Assembly: GCF_032191835.1 (NCBI RefSeq)
Contig: NC_083243.1
Coordinates: 171,740,001-171,804,000 of the forward strand
Reading direction: 5' to 3'
Source: Heteronotia binoei
Taxonomy: Eukaryota
Length of the DNA: 64,000 nt
In this document: piece after piece, positions 55,901 through 61,900 of the stretch
Numbering within the stretch: position 1 is the stretch's first letter
Layout of the letters: each line of letters starts with the position of its first letter
Notes under the pieces: model-generated
What the model saw: only the letters and a program-made list of their open reading frames with translations
The model's database searches: none
Told to the model about the DNA's origin: nothing
Translations under genes and position numbers: made by a program

Positions 55901-58900
55901 TGTCTTCTGATGCTTGGTTTCATAGGCTTGCTAGTGTACTGAATTTTGAAAATAGCGTGAGAAACACTGAAGCACCGAGACACTATTACTTAGATGGGTT
56001 ACATTTATGAAGTTTCAAGCTTCCTATGCTTCTGGAAACTGTATCTTCATATCAACGTTTCAGACACACTGAATAGCTGTTAACATTATTTCCACCTCTT
56101 AGATGTTCCAGGGCATGAAGAAGTGGGCGGGTGACCAGAGTGAAAAATGTCATTGTGTGTGTTCAGAAGGCGACATTGTTGTTAAGCAGGAATTGCTTCT
56201 GAGGAAAGCAGCGAAACAAGGGCAAATGCGGGCGGGAGGGGAACGGCAAACTGCAGTAGAGAAAGGGATAAGCTTTCCGTGCTGTTCTCTAAAAGTCAGC
56301 CACACTTGGCGACGGCGGGGGAGTGGGGAGGGGGGGGGGAGGCTGGCCCTGGATTCTCCAATTGCAGTAGTGTTGGGGGAGGGGAGAAGAGTCTGCCAGG
56401 GCTGCCATTTTGACCAATCAGCAGCCAGCGAACAGCTTGGTCCAGCCCTCCCCCCCCCTCCCAACTCTGCAGCAGAACGGCTCTGCCCTCCCGTACATTG
56501 CCTCACTTGCTTTCTCGGCCTCTTTTTCTCTTCTGCCATCTTCCGTTGCAAAGCATTGCTGGGAACTGCATGTGGGTGACGCAGCAGCATTGTTTGCAGG
56601 CACAGGAAGCTTCCGCTGAAGGGTTCTGGAAGGAGCATGCTGCTGGAAGGGCAGCTGCTTGGGCTGGTAGAGTTAAGGAATGACTGACTGTTCGGTGCTT
56701 CTCTTGTGAAAGTGGATTGTGAGGAAATTGAGCACTGGAGAAAAAAAACATCGAAGCCAAAGCTCTGTAACTTGGCCGAATAGAAAACAAAGGGACTCGG
56801 AAACTTCCTCCGAGAGTCTCGGCACCTTCAGTGGAACGAAGTACGCACGCAAGGTCAGGCAGATACGGCGCTTTTGGCGCAAGCCTCAGTACTGGGAGTG
56901 GGGTGGTTCTTGAGGAGGAAGCGAGCTACTTCCCGCAGGACTGTTGCTACTGTTTGCCAGCGGATTTCCCCGTCCCAGAACTGAGGGGCGAGGTACTTAT
57001 CTGGCGCTTGCTTGGCGAGGGAGCGTTGTATGAAAGGCGTTTTATGTAGGGGCAGTGCAGGGTCTCCTTAACGCGGCCGTTGGAACAGCGGCTGTGGGTG
57101 GTGTGTTGTTATACAAGCCGATGTGTGTGCACTTTTTTTCTTGGGGCCGCTTTTTTGAAACCCTTGTGGGAGAGTGGAGCTGGGTGTTTCCTTCCCAGAG
57201 CTTGCGTGCCTGTGCAGCCGCCCTTAAAGTGCCCCAGGCTGATGGAGAGAGCGTTTCTCCCTTCTGCCCCGTAAAGCATGCGTCTTCATGCCCTCGAATG
57301 CCGACCTTTCCTCAACTGTAAACTGTAGGGAAGAGGGTGGGGCTTGGAGACTGCACGTTCTGCTGGACTAGCCGAGGCAGCCACTTCCTCCCACCCACAC
57401 TGTTCTCTTAAAAGGGTGGAGGAACACAGTAGAATGGTTCTGGATTAGTGATTTTCTGTTAAAGATTGGTTTGGTTTTAAATTCCAGTTGTATTGTGTCC
57501 CTTAATAACTTTGTTTAAAATGAGTTTAAAGCAAAACAATTACATACTGCCCTCATGATACCTTTAAAGTGGATCCATGATCATACTGAGAACCTTCTAT
57601 TGTACGTAAACGTGCAAACCAGGGCAAAAATATATAAGTAAATGACTTTTGCTTAGTGTTTTAACATGTGTGTAGAAAACCTTGATCTCACAGTTGCTTC
57701 CCTAAATTCTGTAGCACCAGAGAGGCTGCAGGTCTTGAAATATGCTCTTGCATAATAGGCTGTAATTGGTTGCAAATCAGATATTTTAATTGATGTAGCA
57801 CCACTTGTCAGGAAAATGTTAATTAGAAAGCTAGAAGTTTGTTAAATCATTAATTTACACACACATACACCAAGAGTATTTAAATTAATCCACCCTGATG
57901 GGAAGCAGTTTCCCAGTACAAGACTCCTATGAGAATATGAATCCCCTTGCTCTGTTAAGTGCAATGGAGAATTAGCCCAGCCCATGCAGTGTTCTTTCCC
58001 TCTTGGCAGCAAAAAACACTCCACTTCCTGCACATGGGTATGCCAGCAGGAGGCTCCTGAAAATGTAACCATAGTAACCTCAAGTAAATAAAGCAGTTCT
58101 GAAATGGCAGTCAGGGGTGGGTGGGGTGGACAGTAGATGCATTGGGGATGTATAATTAAATTAAGGGATTCTAACAGAGCAATTCTAAGCAGGTCTACTC
58201 TGAATTTTACTACAGTCTATTCAATGGAACTTACTCCCAGGAAAGTGTCTTTAGGATTGCAGTGTAAATCCATGGAAATTACAACCACTTGTTGCTAATG
58301 CCCAGCCACATGGCTTGGAAGTTAGATAGCTTCCTTTGCGAAAGATTAGCCACCTAAAACAGTATGATTGAAAAGGCTGCTTTTGGTTCCTGCTTACTGT
58401 CTGGGTAAAATAGAATCTAGCTATACTTGTATCTTATACAGAGGGCACTGTGGTTGTGTGGAAAAGACCACATAGTCTAGAATGGTTATGTGATCCCCCT
58501 CCCCCCCCCCACTAGTTTGGTGTAGTGGTTAAGTGTGCGGACTCTTATCTGGGCGAACCAGGTTTGATTCCCCACTCCTCCACTTGCACCTGCTGGAATG
58601 GCCTTGGGTCAGCCATAGCCCTGGCAGAGGTTGTTCTTGAAAGGGCAGCTGCTGTGAGAGCCCTCTCAGCCCCACCCACCTCACAGGGTGTCTGTTGTGG
58701 GGGAGGAAGGTAAAGGAGATTGTGAGCCGCTCTGAGACTCTTCGGAGTGGAGGGCGGGATATAAATCCAATATCTTCTTCTTCTTCTTCTAGTGTGATAA
58801 TGTGTAAACCAGAAGGGAAGCAGTCTGCAGTTCAAAACTTACTTTGGCCCATAAGCAACACAGGGGCAAGAACAACACTGTTCTATCTTACAGAGTCACA

Positions 58901-61900
58901 AAGATTACCAGAAAACAATAATGAAGTGCTCTGAACATGTAAACTGTATGAAAAAAAAGTAAGATTTTTTTTTTCATTTTTGTGTTTCTGTTGTAGCTGT
59001 TGTTGGAGGAATACGCAAGCAGTGACCCCAAGCTGGCACTTACTGGAATCCCTATTGTCCAGTGGCCAAAGAGGGATAAGGTAAATGATGGGTTTGTGAC
59101 TTGGTTTAGATAGTGACTTGGTGTGAGGAACATGAAAACTTTGATAGTTGGAAGCTATAGCCCCCTAGTTTAAGATAAGAAGTTGAGAAAAGGTCTCTGC
59201 CATTCTTTATATTTTAAAGGAGAAGCGGATTTATATGCAAGCTGCAGGTATGAAAATTAAGAGTATTGGAAATTCAGGATAAAGAAACCAGAAAGGTCAT
59301 AATCATGGCATCAGTTTTTAGGAGCAATCTTTGCAAAACCCAGAATTAGTTAATGATAAACAAGTGTTTTCAGAGTTTTCTGTCACTGGGAGAAGCAAAG
59401 TCCTCTTAAGTCATGTTTTCAGTTTCCAGTTCCTGAGATTGAACACATACTGCAATCCTCTTGAGATGCCACCTATCTTCTCCCCTATCTTTCTTTTTCA
59501 CTGACAGCTCAAACTTCAGGTTCGGCCAAAGTTAAGATTACCTACCATCCCTATCACCAAGCCCCACACCATGAAACCAGCGCCACGACCTGCAACTGTG
59601 AGGCCCACAGTCTCTCCTATAGTGTCTGGTGCTCGCAGAAGGCGGGTGCGATGTCGTAAATGCAAGGCCTGCTTGCAGGGTGAATGTGGCATGTGCCACT
59701 ACTGCAGGGATATGAAGAAGTTTGGTGGGCCTGGTCGTATGAAGCAGTCCTGTGTATTGCGACAGTGCTTGGCGGTGAGTAATGTGGCATAGTTAGCCAG
59801 GAAGCTACTTGTGTATCTGGAAGAATTGATTTCAGTATGCTTTGGGGGAAGAGGATGGCCTGCTATGCCTCTCAAAAGTAGAAGGAACAAAGGAGACTGA
59901 GATTCCAGATCTGGTGGCTAGGGTTAGCACTGGAATCTTTCTGTAGAACACACAGCAAAGCAATAAATAAATAATTAAATAGTTATTCTAGAAGTTTAGG
60001 GGGGGAAGTTATGTGGTGTGACTTTCTGTTTCATTGCTTACTTTGTAGCCTCGACTGCCTCACTCTGTCACTTGTGCACTTTGTGGAGAGGTAGATAAGA
60101 ATGAGGATTCACAGGACTTTGAGAAGAAGTTAATGGAATGCTGCATCTGCAATGAAATTGTTCACCCTGGCTGTTTACGGGTATTGTTCTGAGCTTGGGG
60201 ACAGCTGGTTGGTTCATTTTATACTGGAGCATCAGGAATAAATGTCTTGCTGAAAATGACTGTCTTTTCTGTACAGATGGATGGGGAAGGGATATTGAAT
60301 GATGAATTGCCCAACTGCTGGGAGTGTCCGAAGTGCTACAAGGGAGATGAGTCGGAGAAAGGCCAGGTAAGACTGTTTCAAGGAGGAGACAAAAGTTTTC
60401 CTCTTTACTTTACAAAAGCAATTGTAGGCATTGTACTGTTCTTGGGTCATGCAGGGAACAAACTGTTGCTGTTTGACATGCACAGAGCCAAACACTCATC
60501 TTGCCTGCGCCTAAGCTCTTGCTAGGATAAGGATTTTCCTGGTGTTTTAAGGTCTTCTCTGCATACCTTGAAAAGGCTTAGTAGTAGGTACATGAAAAGC
60601 GTCTTATCAGGCAATCACCTATGATAGAGTAAAATAACTCCACCTGGAAATGGAGTGAACAGTGCCACAACACACTGTTCATAATTGAGCTACTTTTCAG
60701 CTCTGCTAGTGGGCTCTACAAAGATCCTATCAGCAAATAAACCCAGACCTCCTGCAGAGCAACCCATCCCTGAGCGGGTAACAGCATCATCTTCCATCTA
60801 CTAAACATCGTGCATATTATCTGTGAGAGGCTGTTGGCACTGTGCCAGCAAAAATATGATTACAAGATCCTGCGCAGAGCTGTGCCCCTCCTATCCCAAC
60901 AAAGAGCATCTCAGTGAAGGCAAGCAAGGGGGAGGAGCAAGTAGGTGGGGAAGAGCTAATTATTATTGAGGTTAAAGCATGGGAAATTTTCTTCCACTCC
61001 AGAAACACTGGTTTTGTTCCTTCTCTCACTTGTATTTTACCATGTTGAAAGTCTTCTGCTGTGATAAGCTGCAGTCCAGCTAAGTGAAGGAATTCTCTGA
61101 TCCTTCTCTTGGTGCCTGTCTGAGAATTTAAGCTGGTATGAGAGGTTAGTCTGTGACCTGCCTAGTAAGATGTTGCTACAGGTAACTGTGTGTGACTTAA
61201 ATCTGGTATAACTGTTGACTGTCTACCTCTGTAATCCTTAAATTTGCACCGTGTGGGGAGAATATGTGATTCTGCAACTTCACAGCATTGTTTTGTGATA
61301 TAAGTAGATATTCAGCTTCTGTTAGCTTTGGTAAAGCATAAGGTCTTAATAACCAGAGGGTGATTTGAAAGGCAATATTGCATGGAAACAGACACTGAAA
61401 TAGGTTGAGCTTATTATATATTCCAAGTGGATGATAAATGATCAAGTATTGTCAGTAACTTTCTTTCTAGAGATCTGTTTGAAAGCTTTGCTCAGGATTG
61501 TTTGCTTAGAGACAGTAGAATTCATACATGAAATTATGTATGCTGCATTGGAGAAGGGATGAAATCACCTTTTCCCCTCTCCTGTCTGTGGAACTGTGCT
61601 GAGAGAAGAGAGGGCAGTTTAACCCCTCCCAAGTGCTGCTCACTGATGGTTATAGCTGTTAGACTACACGTGTCCTTTGACCATGGAAATAAGGTTTTTT
61701 TAGGTTTGGGAAGGACTGTTGTGGGGGGGGGGTGTGGTCCACAGTTCTTGCAACCACAGATCACTGGATTTAGCCCATAGAGCAAACCAAGAATGTGCTT
61801 CCCCAAGGATTTCGGGACAAGGCTTTCTCGATTAGGCGTATGTCTGTGTATGATCCCACAGACCTGTGGTCCCTAGATATTTGGCTACATATCAGAAATG

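Follow-up and report, generated by a model that had tools for sequence, protein, structure and literature searches.

A probable lizard counterpart of the KDM2A short-form promoter and first exon: a conserved core and splice donor in intron 12

We analysed a 64,000-nucleotide stretch of the genome of the lizard Heteronotia binoei (contig NC_083243.1, positions 171,740,001 to 171,804,000 of the forward strand), called the window below, in whose coordinates all positions are given. KDM2A (lysine-specific demethylase 2A) lies on its plus strand, from the start-codon exon (~1.9 kb) through the F-box exon at 63201-63913. The mammalian short form of this gene, KDM2A-SF, starts with an exon 1b located in intron 12 (PMC7000146, PMC7588095), and the human protein comprises residues 543 to the C-terminus (PMC5388433). 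A block of the lizard intron 12 at about 56340-56860 is, with high probability, the orthologue of this short-form promoter together with its non-coding first exon 1b. An earlier sequence-only reading had proposed such an arrangement from the DNA letters; here it is weighed against rodent and bird loci, annotated proteins and sequencing runs.

The KDM2A locus around intron 12

The exons that frame the block, all on the plus strand, are:

48265-48663, plus strand: KDM2A exon 12, ending ...IADVK with donor AAG/GTATGA (read from translation and donor; 5' boundary approximate)
58997-59080, plus strand: KDM2A exon 13, ending ...KRDK, phase 0 at both ends, without an ATG
59508-59774, plus strand: KDM2A exon 14, the CXXC zinc finger exon, containing the ATG at 59571

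Intron 12 extends over 48664-58996 (10.3 kb), and the candidate promoter/exon block lies within its last quarter, between exon 12 (...IADVK) and exon 13 ((I/L)LLEE...). Nucleotide identity of exon 13 to its rodent and bird counterparts is 81-85% (blastn). Exon 14 matches Pfam zf-CXXC (2.9e-15) and residues 523-612 of human KDM2A in the PDB (7uv9_K, E 5e-46). The CXXC, PHD and F-box domains are all encoded 3' of the ATG at 59571 (Pfam).

The features of the block are as follows:

56338-56383, plus strand: upstream promoter block, 79-81% identical to rodents over 47 nt (blastn)
56414-56418, plus strand: CCAAT box shared unchanged by lizard, vole, woodrat and bird, in the NF-Y-like context gaCCAATcag
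56452-56558, plus strand: promoter core block, 76% identical to bird contig L003 over 108 nt (E 2e-18)
56533-56853, plus strand: proposed non-coding exon 1b, orthologous to the first exon of two rodent models (P0084, P0085)
56686-57309, no strand assigned: CpG island of 624 bp with GC content 0.54, observed/expected CpG 0.76 and 34 CpG
56854-56859, plus strand: splice donor GTCAGG (AAG/GTCAGG), with an unusual C at +3

CpG island and promoter motifs

CpG islands were defined by the Gardiner-Garden and Frommer criteria (at least 200 bp, GC content of at least 0.5, observed/expected CpG of at least 0.6). By this definition 56686-57309 is the sole segment longer than 500 bp in the window, in which the overall observed/expected CpG is 0.215. 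The island begins where the sequence-only reading had placed the start of exon 1b and reaches ~450 bp into the downstream intron. The part that this reading assigned to the promoter proper (56100-56682) is GC-rich (0.56), but its observed/expected CpG is just 0.39. The retention of CpG in the island is indirect evidence that would point to hypomethylation in the germline.

The GC-box, CCAAT, YY1, ETS and E2F motifs named in the sequence-only reading are found where it put them. GGGCGG occurs on the plus strand at 56125 and 56230 and on the minus strand at 57223. CCAAT lies at 56358 and 56414, and GCCAT at 56404 and 56535 (minus-strand reading AAGATGGC); the block also has ETS-like GGAAG cores, and TTTGGCGC is found at 56873. 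Among these motifs, alignment limits conservation in other species to the CCAAT at 56414 and the GCCATCTTCCG core. The CCAAT at 56358 was rejected as a conserved element on the basis of the alignment with other species, as was the E2F-like site, which sits 3' of the donor and is not conserved. The block had also been called free of transposable elements, and this agrees with a self-comparison that found no second copy of 55800-57600 elsewhere in the window and with the lack of any match to Rfam families in 56611-59800.

Two further blocks of intron 12, at 49068-49838 and 52142-53013, are rich in GC (up to 0.60) with observed/expected CpG of at most 0.5. They hold long proline-rich chance open reading frames (ORFs), and nothing in the rodent or bird loci corresponds to them; probably they consist of low-complexity or repeat DNA specific to this lineage.

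Conservation of the promoter core, exon end and donor

The block was compared with two rodent loci, from the vole Myodes glareolus (L001) and the woodrat Neotoma lepida (L006), and with bird genomic contigs (L003-L005, L007-L008) whose identity is known only via the protein cluster of their exon-16 ORF. For L003-L005 this ORF clusters with a galliform protein, and for L007-L008 with Centropus and Cariama proteins. Two contigs do not reach the block: L002, from a close squamate relative, is without upstream DNA, and L008 begins 3' of exon 1b. Lizard 55000-56558 and the sequence from 56611 onward served as queries in local blastn searches, and alignments were made with MAFFT. The mammalian side of the comparison consists of the two rodents.

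The blastn matches are strictly collinear and continue into exons 13-16. In addition to the bird match listed above, which lies 1.26 kb 5' of exon 13 in L003, the core block aligns to both rodents (56454-56557, 70% over 105 nt, E 2e-7). The end of the proposed exon aligns across the donor to the rodent exon end (56778-56860, 74-75%, E 1e-5 to 1e-6), and 56785-56834 aligns to bird contig L007 (85%, E 1e-8). The rodent sequence matched by the lizard exon end is the first exon of the rodent models P0084 and P0085, which bears out, for rodents rather than human, the resemblance to the mammalian alternative first exon, with indels, that the sequence-only reading had suggested. Across the 10.3 kb of intron 12 (48664-56558 and 56611-58996 searched), nothing else could be aligned apart from an intronic element at 58037-58104 (described below). 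Because exon end, donor and upstream block align collinearly with rodents and bird, the element predates the mammal-reptile split, in support of the age that had been proposed for the two-promoter switch.

Within the core block, lizard, vole, woodrat and bird all carry the string CTGCAGCAGAA.GGC unchanged (MAFFT). The 25 nt at 56533-56557 consist of the same bases in all four, save one extra C in the bird, and combine a YY1-like GCCAT/AAGATGGC with an overlapping ETS-like CTTCCG. Conservation of the upstream promoter was found at both the CCAAT box and this 25-nt core. Local translation through 56559-56610 is nearly alike in lizard and vole, and the conserved core therefore probably extends into this segment. 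The donor GCAAG/GTCAGGC reads the same in all five sequences compared, those of lizard, vole, woodrat and two bird contigs, and the spacing from core to donor is 321, 330, 331 and 348 nt across the four species. Observed/expected CpG of the orthologous sequence is 0.58-0.75 in the bird, a strong island, and 0.22-0.41 in the rodents, a weak one, against a background of 0.17-0.18.

A second conserved feature lies further downstream:

58037-58104, plus strand: conserved element in the intron that separates exon 1b from exon 13, including the invariant AAGTAAATAAA

It matches bird contig L007 (944-1002; 78% over 59 nt, E 1e-7) and vole L001 (11075-11130; 74% over 58 nt). Lizard, vole and bird have GCCATAG.AAC...AAGTAAATAAA in common, which includes AATAAA and a possible GTAAAT donor. 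The element could control splicing or polyadenylation, or be a cryptic exon.

The proposed exon 1b and the path to the first ATG

The 3' end of the proposed exon 1b is fixed at 56853, and its 5' end is predicted to lie within about 56480-56690. The start at 56683 given in the sequence-only reading was rejected as arbitrary, having been chosen just past an ATG (56680). The GT of the donor is present at 56854, as had been noted. On a rough weight matrix it scores 3.23, within the top 2.3% of GTs, a level reached by chance at 1.3 sites/kb. The donor alone is no better than chance; its weight comes from its conservation.

The claim that no ATG occurs from 56683 to 59571 is correct: there is none in 56683-56853, in exon 13, or in exon 14 before 59571, and the joins ...CAAG+CTG... 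and ...TAAG+CTC... generate no new one. The first ATG after 56683 is the one at 59571 in the CXXC exon (cacaccATGa, MKPAPR). Further upstream are ATGs at 56570, 56637 and 56680, each opening a short frame that ends at a stop within 56681-56709; exon 1b includes these three short upstream ORFs provided that the transcription start site is 5' of their ATGs. The KDM2A frame of exon 1b has a stop at 56707 and is open thereafter, without an ATG, up to the donor. In bird L003 there is a stop in the KDM2A frame seven codons 5' of the donor, and exon 1b is therefore non-coding in the bird also.

The first upstream ATG lies 37-38 nt past the start of the core in four of four species (window 56570; L001 9780; L006 9818; L003 6605). 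This fixed offset would mark either the start of a conserved upstream ORF or merely a part of conserved promoter DNA.

Annotated short products and transcripts

RefSeq lists a short KDM2A product in a gecko. XP_054826549.1 (P0052), lysine-specific demethylase 2A isoform X4 of Eublepharis macularius, has 619 aa and begins at a Met that matches the window ATG at 59571 (MKPAPR). It was found in the protein cluster of a coral-snake transcript ORF. The window is identical to it over exon 14 from the ATG (100%, residues 1-68) and 96% identical over exon 16.

The cluster of an exon-16 ORF holds two partial rodent models of 674 aa, KAK7813247.1 (P0085, Myodes glareolus) and OBS72883.1 (P0084, Neotoma lepida). 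Their N-termini read ...QKTKQRRWGNFTQEPLQLQS(D/N)KKCK followed by ILLEELASSDPK, which is exon 13. Both models thus open with an intron-12 exon joined to exon 13, in keeping with the published KDM2A-SF exon 1b (PMC7000146, PMC7588095), and this exon also resembles the human string given in the sequence-only reading. The extra ~50 N-terminal residues of both models are probably an annotation artefact, since the literature and the in-frame stops of lizard and bird indicate that this sequence is 5' untranslated region. On the rodent loci the in-frame reading of exon 1b occupies 10001-10072 of L001 (P0085) and 10001-10111 of L006 (P0084).

Two ORFs from Micrurus transcriptomes (P0016 and P0053, 145 aa) also begin at the MKPAPR Met. 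They span exon 14 to exon 15 and then enter the intron after ...EKGQ, as partly processed KDM2A transcripts. Protein word searches with exon 16 and exon 14 returned exon-sized ORFs only, and among them no RNA contig with the junction. P0010-P0014 have a mammalian, perhaps human, appearance.

Words sampled from 56300-57000 were partially present in sequencing runs (20 rows from 12 studies). Four of these rows, from two studies, are labelled as RNA; they contain 0.37, 0.33, 0.24 and 0.19 of the sampled words, none reaching half. These shares, a weak hint, would suit an exon of about 200-300 nt better than unspliced DNA.

Proposed mechanism and alternative explanations

We propose that the block acts as a TATA-less CpG-island promoter with a CCAAT box and, ~120 nt 3' of it, a YY1/ETS-like core. 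Transcription would start a few hundred bases 5' of the donor at 56854, and exon 1b would be spliced to exon 13 at 58997. With the KDM2A frame stopped at 56707, translation would begin at the first AUG, at 59571 in exon 14.

Several points weigh against this reading. For this lizard we infer that the promoter fires, where exactly transcription starts, that 56853 is joined to 58997 and that the protein is made. The gecko isoform X4 is a computational prediction, for which we likewise infer the use of the orthologous exon 1b, and the rodent models are automatic, labelled 'partial', and read exon 1b as coding. By consensus the donor is weak, with its C at +3 and a score well under the value of about 5 for exons 13 and 14. 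The RNA word shares are not placeable within the 701 nt sampled and may stem from conserved parts of relatives. The reading frame of exon 1b gave no match in a word search, and such a blank carries little weight.

The alternative that survives best, though we consider it improbable, is that in sauropsids the block works as an enhancer within the intron, or drives a separate transcript, non-coding or antisense, instead of providing the first exon of the KDM2A short form. CpG islands and CCAAT, YY1 and ETS cores mark enhancers and bidirectional promoters too, long chance ORFs occur on both strands, and the start site and junction are, for this lizard, predicted from the DNA. Several observations speak against it. 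The rodent models join exon 1b to exon 13, a 619-aa isoform is annotated in gecko, and a plus-strand donor 321-348 nt past the core is invariant in five sequences despite its poor consensus. The main point against the enhancer-only explanation is that a donor of such poor consensus would hardly be invariant if it were not used.

It is less probable still that exon 1b serves chiefly inside the full-length transcript, as an internal cassette ('poison') exon, and not as a first exon. The stops in its KDM2A frame mean that inclusion would truncate the long form, and the second conserved intronic element at 58037-58104 hints at more splicing regulation. A cassette exon would need an acceptor 5' of the block; none is known, no search aimed at one having been made. 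The conserved upstream part is promoter-like, with a CCAAT box followed by YY1/ETS motifs in a CpG island, and the mammalian literature treats it as a first exon that bears the chromatin marks of promoters (PMC7000146). That the stretch is CpG-rich by chance, with accidental motifs and without function, is effectively refuted: the motifs are individually short and the donor score is one expected 1.3 times per kb, but the collinear amniote conservation (E down to 2e-18) within an otherwise unalignable 10-kb intron, and a 25-nt core with identical bases except the one C inserted in the bird, would have to be accidental.

Other features of the window

A short interspersed nuclear element (SINE)-like repeat with a recurring translated string occurs three times, at 58490-58790, ~18544-18699 and 20178-20340. 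One copy falls in the intron that separates exon 1b from exon 13; another adjoins a run of N at 20344-20573. In an early KDM2A intron, 7709-9249 holds stop-free stretches that resemble fragments of a Tc1/mariner-type transposase, between which a reverse-transcriptase tail is inserted; they look like transposon remnants.

Significance

If the block is the short-form promoter and exon 1b, the two-promoter design of KDM2A goes back at least as far as the ancestor of amniotes. Its CCAAT box and 25-nt YY1/ETS-like core offer a short, concrete target for mutation by reporter assay or genome editing. For annotators there is a caution, in that rodent models with a coding exon 1b are probably wrong. 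Binding of the KDM2A CXXC domain to its own island (autoregulation), which the sequence-only reading had raised, is speculation that would hold for any unmethylated CpG island.

More tentatively, and with doubts that exceed our confidence, we suggest that a core of ~85-110 nt (CCAAT and YY1/ETS-like motifs, extending into 56559-56610 and with the upstream ATG at 37-38 nt) is ultraconserved across amniotes and paired with an invariant, deliberately weak donor. Should this be true, the ratio of long form to short form would be a tightly regulated ancient switch, not a mammalian peculiarity, and the switch might be older than amniotes and possibly common to KDM2B.

Comparison with known systems

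Internal promoters of this kind 'have not been characterised yet' according to Vacik, Ladinovic and Raska 2018, whose review also asks whether isoforms that are catalytically dead represent a mechanism conserved in evolution (PMC7000146). We found no papers on a non-mammalian KDM2A-SF in the literature searched. The arrangement is already known in mammals and a short isoform is already in RefSeq for a gecko, so the kind of system is unchanged; what appears to be new is the nucleotide-level evidence that squamates, birds and rodents share the promoter core and donor.

The closest known system is mammalian KDM2A-SF. It occupies the same intron and has the same downstream exon 13, its translation begins at the corresponding Met of the CXXC exon, and its product has the domain content predicted for the lizard protein; at the rodent loci the exon end, donor and upstream core are alignable with the lizard at nucleotide level. 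It differs in that the host here is a squamate, in which expression of the short form is predicted. Compared with the two rodents, the lizard has a stronger CpG island (observed/expected CpG 0.55-0.65 vs 0.22-0.41), indels in the exon interior, and a stop where the rodents read an open frame. The Eublepharis macularius protein XP_054826549.1 shares the first Met with the lizard window, but is a computational model from another species. KDM2B-SF, from an internal promoter in KDM2B intron 11 or 12, is like KDM2A-SF a CXXC-PHD-F-box-LRR protein without JmjC. The same domain order without JmjC is found in FBXL19, which unlike KDM2A-SF is the product of a separate gene; KDM2B-SF and FBXL19 both belong to loci paralogous to KDM2A.

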